Sequence record: MN871449.1
Length of the DNA: 64,000 nt
Strand: one strand, 5' to 3'
Shown: positions 32 through 51,260 of the stretch, piece by piece
Layout: every line of letters begins with the position of its first letter
Position numbering within the stretch: the stretch's first letter is position 1
Notes under the pieces: generated by a model
The model's database searches: none
What the model saw: the letters and a program-made list of their open reading frames with translations, nothing else
What the model was told of the DNA's origin: nothing
Made by a program: the position numbers and the translations under genes

Positions 32-35
32 TATG
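32..35 (+). promoter_or_regulatory. Candidate TATG-type (phiKZ-like nvRNAP) promoter, TTATGAAC, upstream of gene 74-841
   Basis: TTATGAAC also occurs at 2572 and 4855, and TTATGAAAC occurs upstream of the capsid gene (48871). TATG is the published phiKZ late promoter core. Confidence 0.4.
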
Positions 36-73
36 AACAAACTTTATTTTCACTCTTATCGTAAGGAAATCAA

Positions 74-841
74 ATGGCTAAGTTACACGAAGTATTGGCA
101 GCAGAACCCACTCGCACCAAACAAGTGCAAGTCCTGATCGAAGACGCCAGTAAAAAATTCAATAAATCGGCTGAATATTTCAGCGGGTTTGATAAAACCC
201 TGAAACTGCACGAAGACAACGACGCCAACGCCGCGATCGAAAAAAGCGAAAGTACCAGCAAGGCAGTGATCACCACTGTTGCCGAAACGTTGCAGTACCT
301 CTTCGAATATTTCGCCACCGCAGAAGATCTTCGTCTGCAAAAAGCCCTGACTAACCAGGTCGCAAAAGCAGACATCATGTTCAAAGGCGAAGTCCTCGTT
401 TCTGGAGTGCCGGTAGATGAACTCCTGGGCCTGGAAAAACGCCTGGCGGAACTGCGCAAACTGATCGCCGCGGCCCCTACTCTGGATTCGTCCAAACAAT
501 GGGAACGCGATAGCAACAGCACCTACGGATTCCGTACCGTGACGGACGAAGTCACGACGAAAACCGAGAAAGTGCTCACTCCGGTTATCCTGGCGCCGGC
601 TACCGACCACCACCCTGCACAGGTGAAAGAATCGGAAAGCACCGTCGTAATCGGTAGCTTCACCCGTAAAAGCTATTCCGGCGCCTGCACCCCGATGCAG
701 AAAGCCAACGCACTGCGTGATATCGACGAACTGATCGTTGAAGTCACTAATGCACGTATGCGTGCAAACTGCACCGAAGTTGTTCAGGGTTCTATCGGCG
801 AAGTGCTGACCAACGTGATTCTGAAAAACTTCACTGCTTAA
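74..841 (+). CDS. Conserved hypothetical protein (255 aa; MAKLxxxxAxE...HPAQV family), candidate partner of the downstream structured RNA
   Basis: Clean ORF, AAGGAA RBS, strongly optimised codons (CTG/ATC/ACC/AAC). Motifs A-D-I...VPVxxLLxLEKRL and ATDHHPAQV resemble, from memory, a widespread uncharacterised bacterial/phage family. Confidence 0.85.
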   Translation: MAKLHEVLAAEPTRTKQVQVLIEDASKKFNKSAEYFSGFDKTLKLHEDNDANAAIEKSESTSKAVITTVAETLQYLFEYFATAEDLRLQKALTNQVAKADIMFKGEVLVSGVPVDELLGLEKRLAELRKLIAAAPTLDSSKQWERDSNSTYGFRTVTDEVTTKTEKVLTPVILAPATDHHPAQVKESESTVVIGSFTRKSYSGACTPMQKANALRDIDELIVEVTNARMRANCTEVVQGSIGEVLTNVILKNFTA

Positions 842-850
842 TGTGTTAGT

Positions 851-1110
851 AATGGGTATTCTCACGAGTGCCCATTGATAATAAAGATTGAGGCCAACTT
901 TATCTTTATTGTTAGTCCGTGTTGCAGGTGTGATGACCCCACTGGAAGTTCGACTCTTTCTTCTCCCACCAAACTATGGGAGAATGGCGGAATTGGTAGA
1001 CGCAGTCATCAATGCACCCATAATGCGACCCGGATGGTTAGTGTTAACTTTATCTTATCGCCTCACACGCTTAAAGATAAAGAGTAAACAGTAAAATAGC
1101 GGACTGAACT
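851..1110 (+). ncRNA. Structured RNA domain containing circularly permuted tRNA-like module 1 (931-1011)
   Basis: T-arm GGAAG-TTCGACT-CTTTC (944-960), TTCTCCC-A-CCA (961-971), linker AACTAT, GGGAGAA (978-984, perfect complement), D-arm GCG-GAATTGGTAGA-CGC, then GTCATCA (1005-1011) pairing with TGATGAC (931-937). Confidence 0.8.
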
Positions 1111-1124
1111 TTCTTTCTCTTACG

Positions 1125-1245
1125 GAAAGAATTCTAGAGGTCGCGGATTCGAATTCCGCTCTGCCTACCTGGACACATTCACAGAGTGTTTCTTGGAGGC
1201 AGATAGCTCAGCCGGTAGAGCACTAGATTATAAAATAAAACTTCC
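1125..1245 (+). ncRNA. Circularly permuted tRNA-like module 2 (1133-1227)
   Basis: TCTAG-AGGTC-GCGGA-TTCGAAT-TCCGC-TCTGCCT-A (1133-1167), ~29-nt hairpin linker, then AGGCAGA-TA-GCTC-AGCCGGTA-GAGC-A-CTAGA (1197-1227). Acceptor and anticodon stems are perfectly complementary in permuted order. Confidence 0.8.
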
Positions 1246-1393
1246 AATCTTATTCTTAGATAGGTCGCGCTAAATTCTGTTTATAGCTGAATGGCTATGG
1301 GCGGTGTTGGGGATGGTTATATCCTTACCTCCGCCCTTCTTACCACAAAAGTTTCTTTTTCAAAGAGATCACTTTTTGATAAATAAATTAATC

Positions 1394-1432
1394 GAGAGAG
1401 GAGGGAATTCCCTCCTCTCTCCTATGCTTTTT
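1394..1432 (+). terminator. Intrinsic terminator-like hairpin ending the gene+RNA unit, followed by TATG
   Basis: GAGAGAGGAGGG-AATT-CCCTCCTCTCTC, then CTATGCTTTTTT. Confidence 0.75.
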
Positions 1433-2990: not shown

Positions 2991-3082
2991 TAATGCACAT
3001 GTTGGGCCAACTTGTCAGCCCCTCAAATTCACTGTGGCGGTTATGCCGCTTGACACCCATACTTTCCTTAAAGGGAATGCAA

Positions 3083-3940
3083 ATGAAGAAACTTGCTTTT
3101 GCCGTGATTTCGGTAGCGTTACTTTGCATGAGTGCTGGCGTATCCGCGGCCGATGGCAAAATTGTTATTACCACCGGTCAACAAGGTTTAACTTATAACG
3201 CCGTTTATGGCGTAAACTTAGCCAGTGCTCTGAGCGAGTACGGTTACCAGACTTCGGTTGTCCCTTCTAAAGGCTCGCTCGATAACCTTGATCGTGTAGC
3301 CTCTGGAGAAGCCACTATCGGGTTTACCCAAGCTGATGCCTATCAGTTCTGGCGTTCGCGTCATGCCAACGAAGCACAGAACGTTGATATCATTGGCGAA
3401 CTGGCCAGTGAGTGCGTCTTTGTCGCCGTCAAGAAAGACGGTAAGGTCACCGGTAAAGGTGATCTAAAAGAAGGCACTAAAATCGCTGTGGGTGAACCTA
3501 CCTCTGGATCTTACGCTTCGTGGCAGTATCTCCAGACATTGGAGAAAAACTACGCGAAAGTTGAAACGTATGCCAAAGGCGGTATCCGTTCTTTGGCTAA
3601 AGTGAATACTGGCGAATACGACGCGTTCCTTTGGGTTTCTGCACCCGACCGGAATAATAAATTCCTGGACGCAGTCATGCAAAAAGACTCGGGACTCGAG
3701 ATCATTGATTTCAACTCCTGGAATGCTGATGCAAAACTGCCGAACGGTAAAGCGGTGTACACGATCGAAAAAGCAACAACCGATTCGGGTATCATTTTCA
3801 ATTCGACCGTAAAAGTCCCTTGCACTAAAACCCTGGTGGTAGCGAATACCTCAGGTGACAGCGACCAGTTCCTTGAAGATGCCTCTACAATTCTTCTGAA
3901 GAACTCTGCGCGCGTTCAGGGTACAGCGTCAGGAAAATAA
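3083..3940 (+). CDS. TAXI-family TRAP transporter solute-binding protein (secreted)
   Basis: Signal peptide MKKLAFAVISVALLCMSAGVSA. TAXI-like motifs ITTGQQGLTY, SKGSLDNL..V.SG...IGFTQAD, IAVGEPTSGS. True start is probably 3083 (AAGGGA RBS), not 2993. Confidence 0.8.
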   Translation: MKKLAFAVISVALLCMSAGVSAADGKIVITTGQQGLTYNAVYGVNLASALSEYGYQTSVVPSKGSLDNLDRVASGEATIGFTQADAYQFWRSRHANEAQNVDIIGELASECVFVAVKKDGKVTGKGDLKEGTKIAVGEPTSGSYASWQYLQTLEKNYAKVETYAKGGIRSLAKVNTGEYDAFLWVSAPDRNNKFLDAVMQKDSGLEIIDFNSWNADAKLPNGKAVYTIEKATTDSGIIFNSTVKVPCTKTLVVANTSGDSDQFLEDASTILLKNSARVQGTASGK

Positions 3941-3943
3941 GTT

Positions 3944-4108
3944 ATGCTGAAAAAGATCGGCTGGTTAATATTACTGGCCGTCATCTTTTTGGTGTTGTTT
4001 CGAATGGCAGGTGTATTGATTGATATTGTCCTGCTTATTATTCTCGCTGGTGCAATTGCCGTTTATGTGCAGCTTGCTTTCAGAAAGAAAAAGAAACAAT
4101 CGAGCTGA
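3944..4108 (+). CDS. Small two-TM membrane protein (54 aa)
   Basis: MLKKIGWLILLAVIFLVLFRMAGVLIDIVLLIILAGAIAVYVQLAFRKKKKQSS; starts 3 nt after the TAXI stop. Confidence 0.75.
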   Translation: MLKKIGWLILLAVIFLVLFRMAGVLIDIVLLIILAGAIAVYVQLAFRKKKKQSS

Positions 4109-4484: not shown

Positions 4485-4826
4485 ATGAATGACGTAACAT
4501 TTGCACACAGTCAAGAAGACATTGATCATATTTCTTATCGTCTTCCTTTAGCCTCTGATCGAACGATTAACGATCCGGCTTATTTGATTAAGTCGAAAGA
4601 CGTTTTCGATATGATCAGGGGAACAGAAGAACTTAATAAGATTGAGAGTTCGAATAATACACGGATAATACATCACTCTCAGATTTACCAGGGCCACTGG
4701 AAAGACCAATTTTTATCGCTGATCAATGCGGCCGCTAAACGCAACGGTTGGAATACCGTCACCCAATATGGCGGACAAATTCTTTTGGTTGCTGATATCT
4801 GGTTATCTGTAGGGAAATTCCGGTAG
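4485..4826 (+). CDS. Hypothetical protein (113 aa)
   Basis: ORF with AAGGT RBS between the two tRNA clusters. Confidence 0.65.
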   Translation: MNDVTFAHSQEDIDHISYRLPLASDRTINDPAYLIKSKDVFDMIRGTEELNKIESSNNTRIIHHSQIYQGHWKDQFLSLINAAAKRNGWNTVTQYGGQILLVADIWLSVGKFR

Positions 4827-5023
4827 GCAATCAAAATTTAAGTAATTCAATATCTTATGAACAAAGATTGTAACTTTCTCTCCGGAATGTTAAGACAACA
4901 ATCAACCTGTTCAAATATTGCGCAAGTCTCAGAGGGAAACCATACGCCCTGAGAAGAAACTAATAGTGCTCCTTGGCCCGAGAGTAAAGAATGCAGCGCT
5001 GAAATAATCGGGTCCCAAATTCA

Positions 5024-5107
5024 GGGGAAGTTCCAGAGTGGTCAAATGGGTCAGACTGTAAATCTGCTGCTTCGGCTTCGGTAGTTCGAATCTACCCTTC
5101 CCCACCA
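5024..5107 (+). tRNA. tRNA-Tyr (GUA)
   Basis: TCAGA-CT-GTA-AA-TCTGC, long variable arm, CCA. Confidence 0.93.
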
Positions 5108-5114
5108 GTTTTAT

Positions 5115-5189
5115 AGAAGCGTAGCCAAGCGGTTAAGGCCCCGGGCTTTGATCTCGGTACCCCTAGTTCGAATCTAGGCGCTTCTGCCA
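5115..5189 (+). tRNA. tRNA-Gln (UUG)
   Basis: CCGGG-CT-TTG-AT-CTCGG; acceptor AGAAGCG/CGCTTCT; G73; CCA. Confidence 0.92.
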
Positions 5190-5194
5190 TTAGC

Positions 5195-5270
5195 GCAAGT
5201 ATAGCTCAGTCGGTAGAGCGATGTCCTTCCAAGTCATAGGTCGCGAGTTCGAACCTCGCTGCTTGCTCCA
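5195..5270 (+). tRNA. tRNA-Gly (UCC)
   Basis: ATGTC-CT-TCC-AA-GTCAT; U73; CCA. Confidence 0.92.
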
Positions 5271-5277
5271 GATACAA

Positions 5278-5379
5278 TGTTCTCGTAGCTCAACTAGGTA
5301 GAGCGCCTGCATCGGCGGCCACTGCGCCGCCAACTGCTTAGCAGGAGGTTGCCGGTTCAAATCCGGAAGGGAACAACCA
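5278..5379 (+). ncRNA. tRNA-like RNA with an extended anticodon arm (30-nt structured loop)
   Basis: Acceptor TGTTCTC/GGGAACA, A-CCA, D-arm GCTC/GAGC, T-loop TTCAAAT. CCTGC/GCAGG encloses ATC-GGCGGC-CACTGC-GCCGCC-AACTGCTTA. Confidence 0.8.
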
Positions 5380-5386
5380 AACAAAA

Positions 5387-5461
5387 GGTGCTATCGTCTA
5401 GCGGAAAGGATACCTCCCTGTCACGGAGGAGACCGGAGTTCAATTCTCCGTAGCACCGCCA
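5387..5461 (+). tRNA. tRNA-Asp (GUC)
   Basis: CCTCC-CT-GTC-AC-GGAGG; G73; CCA. Confidence 0.93.
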
Positions 5462-5467
5462 AATAAT

Positions 5468-5541
5468 GACTCTTTAGTTCAGTTGGTTAGAACGGCAGCC
5501 TGTTAAGCTGTAGGTCCCAGGTTCAAGTCCTGGAAGAGTCG
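5468..5541 (+). tRNA. tRNA-Asn (GUU)
   Basis: GCAGC-CT-GTT-AA-GCTGT; acceptor GACTCTT/AAGAGTC; G73; CCA not encoded. Confidence 0.9.
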
Positions 5542-5550
5542 CATTTTAAT

Positions 5551-5640
5551 AGAGAGTTGGATGAGCGGTTTAAGTCGCTCCCCTGCTAAGGGAGTGTATC
5601 CGAAAGGGTACCGAGAGTTCGAATCTCTCACTCTCTGCCA
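5551..5640 (+). tRNA. tRNA-Ser (GCU)
   Basis: CTCCC-CT-GCT-AA-GGGAG, long variable arm, G73, CCA. Confidence 0.95.
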
Positions 5641-5893
5641 AATAATGACATCTTACTTAGACTAAAGGCAGGGGTTAACCAGGCGACTTAATGTTGCGGA
5701 GAGTTAATCTTGGCCTAAGGCAAAAGTTGACCTCGGCGTGCTGAGGGGGATGTCTCCTTGTTATCCCTACGTAAATCATCGACGAATAAATGAGCCGTTA
5801 AATACGACCCATTTAAGCATAATTGCATCTCGGCTAAACACCGGGCGCTGCTGGTGTAGATGATACTCATTGAGTGCTAGGGAACCTATTCAA
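5641..5893 (+). ncRNA. Unclassified structured RNA within the tRNA array
   Basis: Nested helices 5765-5769/5878-5882, 5775-5780/5859-5864, 5793-5797/5831-5835, 5798-5803/5811-5816, 5838-5844/5851-5857; hairpin 5731-5746. No ORF of 60 aa or more. Confidence 0.55.
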
Positions 5894-6001
5894 TGATAGG
5901 CTAGCTTAAAGGTAAAGCGCGGGCATTAGGCCCCCTCTCATACGAGGGGCGCCTTAACATGGGAGCCTGAGATAGCCGTTCGATTCGGTACCTATCAACC
6001 A
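5894..6001 (+). ncRNA. tRNA-like RNA with an extended anticodon arm (40-nt structured loop)
   Basis: Acceptor TGATAGG/CCTATCA, A-CCA, D-arm GCTT/AAGC, T-loop TTCGATT. CGGGC/GCCTG encloses ATT-AGGC-CCCCTC-TCATAC-GAGGGG-C-GCCT-TAACATGGGA. Confidence 0.8.
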
Positions 6002-6005
6002 AAGT

Positions 6006-6703
6006 TGGACTTAAAAGAGAGAGTGCGAGTTAATGGGTCGCACAACGCCACTAGGCGAGACACCGGAGTCAGTGGTGGCGCTAGTAGAAGAAGTCAGTTA
6101 CCGGTATGCGGCCGCAACAAATTAACTGATACCCATTCTACACTTTTAAAGTCCACGTAACCTTTACAATACTGCTCTAGTCAAGTGATATTGTTTACAG
6201 AGAGTGCAGGTTCGACTCCTGCTCGGTAGTAGAGGCTCGGTAGGAAGGGAGTTCGGAATCGTATCCGAATGATTTGTCCAATAAGCAATAACTTATTGGT
6301 AACTCTCGTGAGACAAAGACTTCGGCGACCCGCCGGTTAAACGCGCCGCGGAATCGGCCGAGGGGTACTAATTATGACGCCTGTCAATTTCGGCGGCCTA
6401 CGCCTTAGAGCGAAAATAGGCGGCCATAGACCATAGACCTCAGCCGGGGATTCCGGCGAAAGAGGTGCAAGGAGCCGGCAAAAATGTCCGGGGGCGTCAC
6501 CCTATTCGATCCATTTCTCCAACGTAGAAGGGATCGGGTATTAAAAATCTGGAAATTAAGCTAACTCGTATAGCCGAGAATAAACATGTTTCGGTGGCGA
6601 CCTTAACATGAAAAGGATGATGTGCGATAAGTCATTTATGAGCTAAACACTGAGATCCTTTTGACTATTAGTCAGTACGAGAGAGGGTCGAAAGACCCTC
6701 TCT
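6006..6703 (+). ncRNA. Large unclassified structured RNA region (one or several RNAs)
   Basis: Closed domain 6006-6155, isolated T-arm 6206-6222, many helices from 6252 to 6662, terminal hairpin 6680-6703. No ORF of 60 aa or more in ~700 nt. Confidence 0.6.
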
Positions 6704-6764: not shown

Positions 6765-6917
6765 ATGATCGGTACTATTCTCGGTGTAGTAGTAGTTGCA
6801 ATTATTGCGATCTTTGTTTATCGTAAACACAAAGCTAAAATGGATCCGGCGCTGGACAAAGTAGCGGAAAAATTTAACGAAGTGAAAGACAAAGTTAGCG
6901 ATAAACTGGGCAGCTAA
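6765..6917 (+). CDS. Small single-pass membrane protein (50 aa)
   Basis: MIGTILGVVVVAIIAIFVYRKHK...; GAAGG RBS before ATG 6765. Confidence 0.75.
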   Translation: MIGTILGVVVVAIIAIFVYRKHKAKMDPALDKVAEKFNEVKDKVSDKLGS

Positions 6918-48974: not shown

Positions 48975-51260
48975 ATGGCACGTCCTAAAAAAGGTCTACT
49001 GGGCGCCGGCGCTGCTGGTGCTATTAAATCACTGGTCGACAGCGTTCGCCAGTCCGTTGAAAAGAACCACACCCTGCTGCCGCAGGGCGCTGCCGCTGGT
49101 GTCATGTCTGTTGCGCTGGAAAGCTACGGTGAACTGGGCGTAAACCCGGAAGAAGTAGAATCCACCCTGGAAGCGGTCAAAGAGTCCCTGAACGACGCGG
49201 TCGATCAGATCAGCTCCATCACCGAATCTGCTGATGCAGTAGACGGCGAAGGCGAAGGCTTTGTTGACGGCGGTGAAGAACTGCGTGAACACCAGAAAGA
49301 AGTTGCGGTTGAAGCAGCTGCTGTCCTGGCGATGTCTCACAACGCACCGCGCGCTTACTACCGTGACGGTTACAGCATTCCGTCCTTTGAAAACGACGTT
49401 CGTGTTAACGAATTCGTTTCTGCGGGTGCTAACGGTTCCATTGCGACCCTGCCGGCCGGTTCCCTGCCGTCTCTGGAATCTTTCGACGAGAAAGAAACCG
49501 AAAAATGGCGTGAACACTCCTACGCGATCAACATGATCGTAGCGAAACAGCACGAGTTCGCTGAACTGTTCTATCGCACCTATATCGTGACCCCGGACCA
49601 GGCTGGCTTCCAGCTGTCTATCCGTCGTAACATGGTGTGGGAAGGCTGGACCGGTGAAGGTCTGGGCGGCGAGAAACAAGAAATCATCAAGCGTAACATC
49701 CTGCAGGGCCTGCTGGATTACACCACTCTGGAAACCAACAGCACTGAGCTGATCCCGGTTATCCAGTCTGGCGAAAACGACGACCAGTTCATCGCCCCGT
49801 CGGTTCTGGCTGCGCAGACCGTGAAACAGGGTAAAGACACCTTCGATACCAACTTCCTGAAATTCAGCGAAAACGGCGAAGGCTTCAACCTGCTGATGCT
49901 GGCGCAAACGCCGTCCCGTCTGAAAAAAGGTTCCATGACCTTTACCGACTCCCTGGACAGCCGTATTGCCCTGAAACAACTGCTGGTCTCCGTCACCAAA
50001 GGCGGCACCACTGAACTGCTGGCGCTGGACGTTAACCAGAACCAGTACGCTGCGTACACCGCGACCCGCGAATACAACTTCCGTCAGATGCAGCTGAAAT
50101 TCCATACCGCTATCGGTCTGGGCGATCAGACTCGTCTGGTGAACGGCGCTGAATCTACAATCTTCGGTTCTCTGTTCGATCAGGGTTATCGCGTTGAGCT
50201 GGACGTGAAAATCGACGGCGAAATGAACGTTGAAAACGGTAACGGCGACACCTCTCTGCGTTCTCTGCGCGTTGCTCGCGTCTTCGACAAAGACGGTAAA
50301 GAAATCGCGCTGACCGATTCGCGCGTTGCTGCGGTACTGTCCGGTCTGGAAGTGAAAGGCGAAGGCTATAGCCTGGAAGCTCGTCTGACCAACATCAACC
50401 AGCTGGAAATGGGTCTGCTGATTGACTCCGACGTACAGAAACAAGGTTTCATGATCCCGACTCTGCCGCCGCTGGTTATCGTTAAACCGGCCATGGTTGA
50501 AGACGACAAAACCTATCCGCGCCTGGAAGCTCTGACCACCGCGTATCGTATCCAGATGCGTAACAACGCCGTAACCACCCTGCTGAACCGCGCAGACACC
50601 CTGAAGTCCTATCTGGGCGTTGGCGTTCCGCACCCGATCGAGTCCAACCTGGGTCTGGAAGGTGTTGGTCAGTACTACGTGCGTCCGTACTTCAACGAAG
50701 CGACCATCGATGTTCTGAACGATCTGAACAGCCTGACCTCTGCTGCAAAACAGAGCGATATTCAGGGCCTGATCGTGTCCAAGATCAACGAAATGGTTTA
50801 CACCGCAGATCAGCTGACCGGTTACACCGCTGCTCTGGAAGCTGCCTTCTCTGGCCGTTCTCCGAAGCCGCACGTAGCTATCGGTACTGACATGCGTCTG
50901 CCGCAGTACATCCAGATCAACGGCGACGACCGCACCGTGGGTATCGGTTACGATTACACCATCGCGCGTATCTCCGATCTGCGTATGAAAGACAAGATCG
51001 TCATGACTTTCATCCTGCCGAACGAGTCTGAACCGCATCCGCTGCAGCACGGCGTTCTGGGCTTCATCCCGGAATACCTGGTTGATTTCAACATGATCCG
51101 TAACCAACGTATCGGTAAAGAAATCCGCCTGACTCCGCGCTACCGCTATTTCAACTTCCTGCCGATCATGCTGGTCATCAACGTGATCAACCTGGAAGAA
51201 GCGATCGCACAGCGTACCTCGCTCGACGTTAACGAAACTCAGGTTGTTCCTGCGTCCTAA
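48975..51260 (+). CDS. Major capsid protein precursor (phiKZ gp120-like)
   Basis: 761 aa, extreme high-expression codon bias, propeptide ending ...PSLESFDEKE, AKQHEFAELFYRT motif, strong terminator after it. Confidence 0.93.
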   Translation: MARPKKGLLGAGAAGAIKSLVDSVRQSVEKNHTLLPQGAAAGVMSVALESYGELGVNPEEVESTLEAVKESLNDAVDQISSITESADAVDGEGEGFVDGGEELREHQKEVAVEAAAVLAMSHNAPRAYYRDGYSIPSFENDVRVNEFVSAGANGSIATLPAGSLPSLESFDEKETEKWREHSYAINMIVAKQHEFAELFYRTYIVTPDQAGFQLSIRRNMVWEGWTGEGLGGEKQEIIKRNILQGLLDYTTLETNSTELIPVIQSGENDDQFIAPSVLAAQTVKQGKDTFDTNFLKFSENGEGFNLLMLAQTPSRLKKGSMTFTDSLDSRIALKQLLVSVTKGGTTELLALDVNQNQYAAYTATREYNFRQMQLKFHTAIGLGDQTRLVNGAESTIFGSLFDQGYRVELDVKIDGEMNVENGNGDTSLRSLRVARVFDKDGKEIALTDSRVAAVLSGLEVKGEGYSLEARLTNINQLEMGLLIDSDVQKQGFMIPTLPPLVIVKPAMVEDDKTYPRLEALTTAYRIQMRNNAVTTLLNRADTLKSYLGVGVPHPIESNLGLEGVGQYYVRPYFNEATIDVLNDLNSLTSAAKQSDIQGLIVSKINEMVYTADQLTGYTAALEAAFSGRSPKPHVAIGTDMRLPQYIQINGDDRTVGIGYDYTIARISDLRMKDKIVMTFILPNESEPHPLQHGVLGFIPEYLVDFNMIRNQRIGKEIRLTPRYRYFNFLPIMLVINVINLEEAIAQRTSLDVNETQVVPAS

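Follow-up and report, generated by a model that had tools for sequence, protein, structure and literature searches.

The window analyzed here comprises bases 1–64,000 of record MN871449.1, the 304-kb genome of phage KpXa_1, whose host is Klebsiella pneumoniae. It opens with a gene for a 255-residue protein of Pfam family DUF7873 (PF25283; positions 74–841, plus strand), followed on the same strand by a strongly paired region, 842–1432, that contains two circularly permuted tRNA-like modules. We find that gene and modules make up a self-contained two-part unit, a DUF7873 gene followed by one or two RNAs of the YrlA type, that recurs in phages and in bacterial chromosomes and is more general than could be seen in the initial annotation of the window, which was made from its letters. 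YrlA RNAs are bound by Ro60 and modified by TruB and DusA, and in some species they are cut by RNase P and given CCA. We consider it an evenly balanced proposition that DUF7873 and the adjacent tRNA-mimic RNA or RNAs form a Y-RNA-like protein-RNA complex that would do without Ro, the binding of the RNA, its processing, and its role being the conjectural parts of this reading.

The conserved linkage of gene and modules is seen most directly in phages. At phage loci with mapped gene ends, a mechanical scanner for strict modules, run over the 1.6 kb downstream of the gene, finds at least one module in 87 of 93 loci, with a median distance of 147 nt from the stop codon to the T-arm, and two modules in 33 of the 93. 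In 80 loci from IMG/VR, whose homologs reach down to 33% identity, the scanner places 109 permuted modules on the strand of the gene and 1 on the opposite strand. A covariance model (R1) built from 25 short-linker modules, and containing the T-arm and acceptor pairs only, gives scores of 35–76 bits on true modules; because the junctions of adjacent normal tRNA genes score 20–30 bits, hits were counted at ∼35 bits or more, and all 112 hits at E ≤ 1e-10 are on the gene's strand. No neighboring cluster of open reading frames (ORFs) besides DUF7873 is common to more than 8 of the 93 phage loci or to more than 11 of 80 bacterial loci; since no other neighboring gene is shared, the adjacency of gene and module is not due to conserved gene order.

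The pair is also present in cultured phages, whose hosts include Gram-negative bacteria, actinobacteria, and cyanobacteria, namely Ralstonia phage RSL1, Rhizobium phage RHph_Y65, Arthrobacter phage Racecar, Gordonia phages Ronaldo and Phendrix, Rhodococcus phage NiceHouse, Vibrio phage K479, and Pseudanabaena phage PA-SR01. In these genomes the modules occupy an otherwise unannotated gap of 400–500 nt, usually in or beside a tRNA gene cluster; the sole cultured phage with no clear module is Microcoleus phage My-WqHQDG, for which the protein match is partial. Some phages carry three or more modules, and extra modules with scores of 50–57 bits are found off the usual position at three loci (L052, 162–236 and 317–401; L024, 3846–3918, directly upstream of the DUF7873 gene; L057, 4804–4880).

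In bacteria, a scan of one genome per species gave at least 557 DUF7873 loci. Among the matches listed are the Actinomycetes Nonomuraea, Actinomadura, Streptosporangium, Nocardia, Streptomyces, and Glycomyces, the cyanobacteria Microcoleus, Nostoc, and Anabaena, and Herpetosiphon of the Chloroflexota, together with Myxococcota, Abditibacteriota, Acidobacteriota, Planctomycetota, one metagenome-assembled genome of Saccharibacteria, and others. Of 80 bacterial loci, 66 have one or two modules 3′ of the gene by the strict scanner, several more being masked by a misplaced gene end, and no module on the opposite strand in any of the 80. The neighbors of the cassette are here unrelated housekeeping genes (protein kinases, ClpP, DnaJ, an ABC ATPase, CysZ). 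One locus, in Streptomyces cellostaticus (L320), has a single in-frame stop codon in the DUF7873 match, which reflects either a pseudogene or a sequencing error; the downstream module is still present. A lack of any comparable downstream RNA beside homologs would have spoken against the initial annotation; most homologs, in phages and bacteria alike, do have such an RNA, and gene and RNA form a conserved unit.

The fold of the modules is under selection. In an alignment of 112 sequences, 99.6% of the cells pair, and all 12 pairs of the T-arm and acceptor stem show double changes (459 cells); the covariation score is 0.98, as compared with 0.21 in shuffles and at most 0.19 with slid partners. 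A D-arm with GG, a feature that lies outside R1, is found at 108 of the 112 hits but in 14% of shuffled tails, and U8 is present in 105 of 106 modules. In 63% of the modules, an anticodon-stem-like helix in tRNA register, with at least 5 base pairs in a row, can form from one nucleotide past the D-arm onward, leaving a 4–5-nt variable loop; in cross-module controls, which combine the flanks of different modules, the figure is 9.6%. Because the helix past position 26 runs on for ∼20 bp with bulges and holds no 7-nt loop, there is no anticodon loop. As read from its pairing pattern, each RNA is thus a predicted tRNA body in which the linker closes the acceptor stem and a long bulged helix replaces the anticodon arm.

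Within the window, where all features lie on the plus strand, region 842–1432 has a predicted folding energy of −210 kcal/mol (z = −9.0 relative to dinucleotide shuffles). Both modules follow the order closing helix, 4–6-nt variable loop, T-arm, 3′ strand of the acceptor stem, linker, 5′ strand of the acceptor stem, U8 and one further nucleotide, D-arm, position 26, closing helix, and both adopt the permuted-tRNA fold when folded separately; the RNA enters and exits each module via the long closing helix. Module 1 (915–1035; R1 score 58.1 bits, E = 4e-18) folds alone as a four-way junction. Its closing helix (915–937/1005–1035) has ∼22 bp, with bulges on the 3′ strand, and encloses the variable loop (938–943), a T-arm with a 5-bp stem and the loop TTCGACT (944–960), an acceptor hairpin with 7 of 7 pairs (961–967/978–984) that is closed by a short linker (ACCA at 968–971 and a spacer, 972–977, that ends in T at −1), and U8, G9, and a D-arm of the tRNA-Leu type (985–1003, the D-arm itself at 987–1003; 3-bp stem and 11-nt loop with GG). 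Module 2 (1084–1284; R1 score 40.5 bits) likewise folds alone (z = −5.4). It consists of two outer helices (1084–1091/1277–1284 and 1097–1105/1262–1270), an inner hairpin (1111–1131), a junction helix (1133–1137/1223–1227), the T-arm (1143–1159), the acceptor stem (3′ strand 1160–1166, 5′ strand 1197–1203), a 30-nt linker hairpin that starts with ACC and carries CAUUC...GAGUG (1167–1196), and U8, A9, and the D-arm (1204–1221, the D-arm itself at 1206–1221; 4-bp stem and 8-nt loop with GG). These are the only two modules found in the 304-kb genome. The 5′ half of module 1 (973–1003) is 87%–90% identical to tRNA-Leu genes in 4,908 E. coli genomes, and no E. coli genome matched module 2; the idea that the modules are copies of KpXa_1's own tRNAs was rejected, as the halves are merely ∼60%–80% alike.

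The modules are flanked by accessory structures. Two hairpins lie between the stop codon and module 1 (852–875 and 876–914; minimum free energy folds, z = −6.2), one between the modules (1048–1082), and three more (1285–1296, 1299–1335, and 1350–1389; z = −7.7 together with the terminator) precede an intrinsic terminator (1394–1432; stem-loop 1394–1421, with a 12-bp stem that includes 8 G-C pairs, then a T run). In an alignment with phage FBKp24 (87% identity to KpXa_1), the last three hairpins are less conserved than the modules, and the terminator stem shows compensatory changes in FBKp24 and in phage Centimanus. Between KpXa_1 and FBKp24 there are ∼10 differences per 400 positions in the RNA from 842 to ∼1240, the locus as a whole being 87.5% identical. 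Much of this had been anticipated in the initial annotation: the pairing potential after the gene and the strong terminator at 1394–1421 are confirmed, and the two circularly permuted tRNA modules are exactly as described there. Its picture of one RNA of ∼550 nt needs revision, in that the region looks rather like two self-contained modules with accessory hairpins, and many relatives have a single module. Nor is the region before the terminator (842–1393), in which no convincing ORF had been seen, free of ORFs, although the small ORFs in 842–1432 (70, 68, 48, and 31 residues, mostly with TTG or GTG starts) recur solely in near-identical relatives.

The linkers that close the acceptor stem fall into two classes. 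Of 33 short linkers, 29 consist of NCCA and an A/T-rich spacer and 23 have T at −1, as in a substrate of RNase P whose 3′ end is encoded. Hairpin linkers prolong the acceptor helix, and many retain N-CC and the CAUUC...GAGUG stem (e.g., L009, L011, L013, and L086); in Rfam, the phage linker hairpin aligns with positions 86–150 of the beta-proteobacterial two-piece tmRNA model, its intervening segment (up to 39.8 bits), and the stem may be a processing signal shared with that RNA. In bacteria, the linkers are mostly loops of 6–8 nt, some of them NCCA-like and many not. First modules often combine a tRNA-Leu-type D-arm (3 bp, 11-nt loop) with discriminator A. At 3:70, the two modules of the window have G-C, and G-U occurs in 2 of 100 unique modules. 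The sequence prerequisites for modification and processing by tRNA enzymes, as known from YrlA, are present: a 7-bp acceptor stem, a UUCRANN loop, G18 G19, and NCCA.

We turn now to the protein. The ORF at 74–841, which starts with ATG and had been singled out for optimized codons unlike those of its neighbors, matches the DUF7873 profile over residues 1–251 of 255 (E = 2.7e-72; 243.8 bits, gathering cut-off 27). The codon bias is real: the G+C content at third codon positions is 0.58, Leu is encoded by CTG at 16 of 24 positions, and major codons account for a share of 0.76, as compared with 0.55 and 0.59 in two neighboring ORFs. Of the ORFs compared, a 761-residue ORF at 48975–51260, probably the capsid gene, is the only one with a higher share (0.89). 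In a protein library, the family makes up 2,281 representative clusters, and every member is a single-domain protein of ∼250 residues. An AlphaFold2 model of the window protein has a predicted local distance difference test score of 89, and a Foldseek search with this model against the PDB and BFVD gave no match at E ≤ 0.001; none of the sequence profiles of PHROGs, NCBIfam, PADLOC, and the PDB matches the protein.

What kind of RNA does the gene accompany? No Rfam family matches 842–1432 at its gathering score, as the initial annotation had led one to expect. The best match is YrlA (RF02553), with 37.6 bits against a threshold of 69, at 1127–1254 in module 2; module 1 gives no hit, and the relatives score 31–39 bits, again below the threshold. 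The order that defines YrlA, with T-arm, closed acceptor stem, and D-arm within a terminal helix, is nevertheless found in both modules. Judged by this predicted architecture, which is of the YrlA type, the RNA fold is not new, and the "new tRNA-mimic class" originally suggested does not stand. A local match to Rfam beta_tmRNA covers the tRNA-like part and linker hairpin of module 2 (24.8 bits, threshold 84). ARAGORN finds neither a tmRNA nor a tRNA in 842–1432, and the Rfam tRNA model gives no match there either.

The same kind of RNA occurs beside a different protein. The phage "Ro-like RNA binding protein" (Pfam DUF2828, DUF7788, and vWA) is found in 711 phage records, for example in cluster L mycobacteriophages and Felixounavirus. 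At one locus (L188), which came by chance from a pattern scan of viral contigs whose listed matches are mostly ordinary tandem-tRNA junctions, a 484-residue Ro-like protein (4644–6098) is followed by two modules (6357–6436 and 6805–6880) that score 55 and 51 bits with R1; in Felixounavirus (L260), the Ro-like gene (1501–2916) heads a tRNA cluster and has a module 1 kb downstream (3968–4037). Because R1 scores the modules of both settings alike, we take the RNAs to be of the same kind, with only the adjoining protein being different; a comparison of DUF7873 with the phage Ro-like protein by hhalign indicates that the two are unrelated (probability 0.3%).

Ro-type genes were sought in KpXa_1 itself by Pfam searches of 79 of the 85 ORFs that pass the size cut-offs (≥270 residues in the window, ≥400 residues elsewhere). 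Neither TROVE, DUF2828, nor vWA was detected in the 30 large ORFs of the window or in 49 further ORFs of at least 400 residues, and tblastn searches of the whole genome with two Ro-like proteins gave nothing at E ≤ 1. The initial statement that the window holds no recognizable Ro, SmpB, or RtcB gene is thus upheld for its 30 large ORFs. Similarly, no Ro-type gene is detectable in the complete genome of phage Ronaldo. The Ro-binding motif GNCGAAN0-1G is not enriched, being found near 8 of 112 modules, approximately the chance rate of 0.12 per 170 nt. Since the motif is likewise missing from the RNAs that adjoin the DUF2828 Ro-like gene, it defines canonical Rsr partners only.

As for transcription, the initial annotation had taken the sequence 'TTATGAAC' for a start signal, but its 5 copies, against 2.8 expected, stand in unrelated contexts. 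Another element, the exact 11-mer AACTTTATYTT, has three sites only in the 64 kb, at 40–50 (24 nt upstream of the DUF7873 start codon), 896–906 (in the hairpin at 876–914), and 1046–1056 (overlapping the hairpin between the modules), i.e., before the gene and before each module; with one mismatch allowed, 13 sites are observed and 4.5 expected. The 11-mer may be a phage promoter or a processing element. Among 74 unique phage loci, 8 have a terminator-like hairpin between the gene and the first module and 25 have one in the 250 nt that follow the last module, and we therefore lean toward co-transcription of gene and RNA, a question that these positions do not settle.

A Ro-independent complex of DUF7873 and its RNA could work as follows. 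Gene and RNAs would be co-transcribed from upstream of the gene, with the DUF7873 protein presumably made in quantity, and the modules would be recognized and excised by tRNA enzymes of the host, by analogy with YrlA of Mycobacterium smegmatis, an RNA with a 7-bp acceptor stem that RNase P cleaves and that acquires CCA in vivo (PMC4201824). RNase P would cut before the 5′ strand of the acceptor stem, and the 3′ side would be trimmed to, or completed as, NCCA, leaving a stable two-piece tRNA-like RNA. DUF7873 would bind this RNA, probably on the long bulged helix, in the place that Ro60 takes with Y RNAs, and the tRNA-like head would recruit or occupy a tRNA-binding enzyme. Because the cassette lies in or beside a tRNA gene cluster, its role in phages would probably be in tRNA handling or RNA surveillance during infection. 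Anti-defense, RNA repair or decay, and translation control, the roles suggested in the initial annotation, are likewise conjectural. In its widest form, which we advance tentatively and regard as possible though short of an even proposition, the proposal would make DUF7873 the protein core of a second, Ro-independent, and ancient family of Y-RNA-like ribonucleoproteins in many phyla and in tRNA-rich phages, with a two-piece RNA that is matured by RNase P and CCA addition and is possibly chargeable, and with a complex that steers a tRNA-binding enzyme in surveillance, in tRNA maturation, or in tRNA protection during infection.

Several observations weigh against a Ro-independent complex. Profile, Foldseek, and hhalign searches identify no recognizable RNA-binding fold and no known relative for DUF7873, and its conserved polar residues (N94, D100, E121, D138, K166, H180, Q183, S202, R228, and N232 in the numbering of the window protein) would equally suit an enzyme, possibly one acting on the RNA. 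The absence of Ro pertains to the phage genome and to canonical TROVE as detected by Pfam in the ORFs searched, six very long ORFs and any Ro60 of the host lying outside its scope. The repeated 11-mer, and a promoter that the FBKp24 record predicts past the stop codon, at the place of 852–914, would allow separate transcription of gene and RNA. Finally, ∼5 of the 93 phage loci (metagenomic, with weak hits of 15–22 bits) and some bacterial loci have a weak module or none.

Some of the evidence for linkage would also fit a role in cis. The modules lie downstream of the gene, on the same strand and near the stop codon, the stretch between gene and module shows no enrichment of terminator-like hairpins, the gene is codon-biased, and the phage modules carry NCCA with T at −1; an RNase P cut in the module could thus give the DUF7873 mRNA a tRNA-like, CCA-ended 3′ end, paired to the small downstream piece, that blocks 3′ exonucleases, the RNA having no independent life. 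We regard this as unlikely. Two module types, one tRNA-Leu-like with discriminator A and the other class-I-like, are kept side by side across phyla, and the full D-arm and the elbow nucleotides are conserved, which would be needless for a mere end protector. In the window, moreover, the stop codon and the module are separated by 74 nt with two hairpins, and YrlA RNAs of the same build are stable, protein-bound RNAs (PMC4201824).

Equally doubtful is the possibility that the RNAs are free decoys or sponges, for tRNA-binding enzymes or for tRNA-directed defense nucleases, with DUF7873 an unrelated gene that shares a strong promoter. The modules do keep all features read by tRNA enzymes, the phage cassettes are located in tRNA clusters, and KpXa_1 has other counter-defense genes, i.e., the Thoeris inhibitor Tad3 and the NAD salvage genes NAPRTase and NAMPT, elsewhere in its genome. 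A role in phage counter-defense is not applicable in bacteria, because the same pairing is found in chromosomes among housekeeping genes, and RNAs without an anticodon loop cannot decoy anticodon nucleases. Sharing of a promoter alone would, in addition, hardly explain linkage to one protein family over such distances.

We consider it improbable that the modules are working permuted tRNA genes, or relatives of two-piece tmRNA without a coding sequence, that are charged with an amino acid and work at the ribosome or donate amino acids. This is suggested by the swapped halves, the encoded NCCA and the 7-bp acceptor stem, by the tRNA-Leu-type D-arm and discriminator A of module 1, and by the local Rfam matches to two-piece beta tmRNA, which include the intervening hairpin. 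An anticodon loop cannot form where the helix runs on for ∼20 bp, however, and ARAGORN recognizes neither type of RNA; the G3:U70 pair is found in just 2 of 100 modules, the D-arm is complete as in tRNA, which the tmRNA D-arm is not, and bacterial modules are often without CCA.

In the records of FBKp24, LPKP23, and Centimanus, a "tRNA-Sup-TTA" or "tRNA-Stop(tta)" called by tRNAscan-SE and ARAGORN is annotated at the place of ∼1086–1169 (L001, 4092–4171; L002, 4087–4170; L003, 4085–4168), and the FBKp24 paper treats it as a suppressor tRNA. Because the call borrows the T-arm of module 2, it is very likely a misannotation of this permuted module. A reading of the region as a plain suppressor tRNA or as tRNA pseudogenes in decay, which such calls would imply, is already refuted by the comparative data, since, besides the borrowed T-arm and the lack of any ARAGORN or Rfam tRNA call in 842–1432, the permuted order is kept with compensatory changes across phyla, which is unlike pseudogenes.

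KpXa_1 itself is probably a distant phiKZ-like jumbo phage that forms a nucleus, because a phiKZ-type major capsid protein and internal head proteins are among the products of the window's large ORFs, and a chimallin homolog and split pieces of a phiKZ-type RNA polymerase are encoded outside it (L255–L259). The record is labeled "Serratia phage" although the host is Klebsiella. Downstream of 842–1432, ARAGORN calls nine ordinary tRNAs in the window. Two further Rfam tRNA matches, at 5279–5375 (38.9 bits, 97 nt) and 5895–5997 (34.4 bits, 103 nt), are not called by ARAGORN and may be atypical or interrupted tRNA genes of the phage tRNA cluster. Between the cassette and this cluster is an ORF (2993–3940) with an NMT1_3/TAXI-type TRAP solute-receptor domain (phrog_6856). 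In Gordonia phage Phendrix, the tRNA region of the cassette contains a full tmRNA (L091, 470–998; Rfam, 89 bits) for which the record has no feature.

To date, the definition of bacterial Y RNAs has rested on a neighboring Ro60, and the reason for their tRNA mimicry is unsettled. Here, a tRNA-mimic RNA is tied to another, uncharacterized protein family of ∼2,300 clusters that ranges from Streptosporangiales and cyanobacteria to nucleus-forming jumbo phages. If the proposed complex is real, the tRNA-like RNA, and not Ro, would be the common denominator, and a second, independent system would be at hand for asking what tRNA mimicry serves. The cassette also provides a first context for Pfam DUF7873, corrects a published suppressor tRNA annotation, and accounts for an unannotated gap of 400–500 nt that recurs in many phage genomes at their tRNA regions. 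In the literature searchable on DUF7873, phage permuted tRNA, and Ro-like proteins, we found no description of the pairing of DUF7873 with a tRNA mimic, and a recent preprint on tRNA mimics deals with other motifs; DUF7873 as a partner and the breadth of the pairing hence appear undescribed there.

Four known systems are close to the cassette. Permuted tRNA genes, known from Cyanidioschyzon merolae and from certain archaea, likewise have the 3′ half upstream of the 5′ half and a linker across the acceptor end, but their transcripts are circularized at a bulge-helix-bulge in the anticodon region and give normal tRNAs, whereas the modules have neither an anticodon loop nor such a motif. Two-piece tmRNA, which works with SmpB, has the permuted order, a segment excised between CCA and the 5′ end, and processing by tRNA enzymes, and the linker hairpin of the window and of other phages has the CAUUC...GAGUG of its beta-proteobacterial intervening segment; the modules differ in having no tag reading frame, rarely G3:U70, and a full D-arm (reduced to a loop in tmRNA), they score far below the Rfam threshold, and the adjacent protein is not SmpB. 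Closer is YrlA with Ro60 (Rsr), as in Salmonella rsr-yrlBA and M. smegmatis YrlA/YrlB, YrlA having been defined by a search that reached up to 400 bp from Ro60 genes (Chen et al., 2014; PMC4201824). The build is shared, from closing helix through T-arm and closed acceptor stem to D-arm, and Ro60 operons also often have two tandem RNAs next to the protein gene, but the modules of the cassette stay below 69 bits and contain no motif of the form GNCGAAN0-1G, and the adjoining protein is DUF7873, of ∼250 residues and with no fold match, rather than a TROVE/vWA ring. The phage Ro-like system, finally, has the same layout, one or two modules that score as high coming after a protein gene, and is likewise placed at tRNA clusters. 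Its protein is unrelated, and the two complete genomes of DUF7873 phages, KpXa_1 and Ronaldo, are without it, so that, on present sequences, DUF7873 and the phage Ro-like protein look like alternatives.

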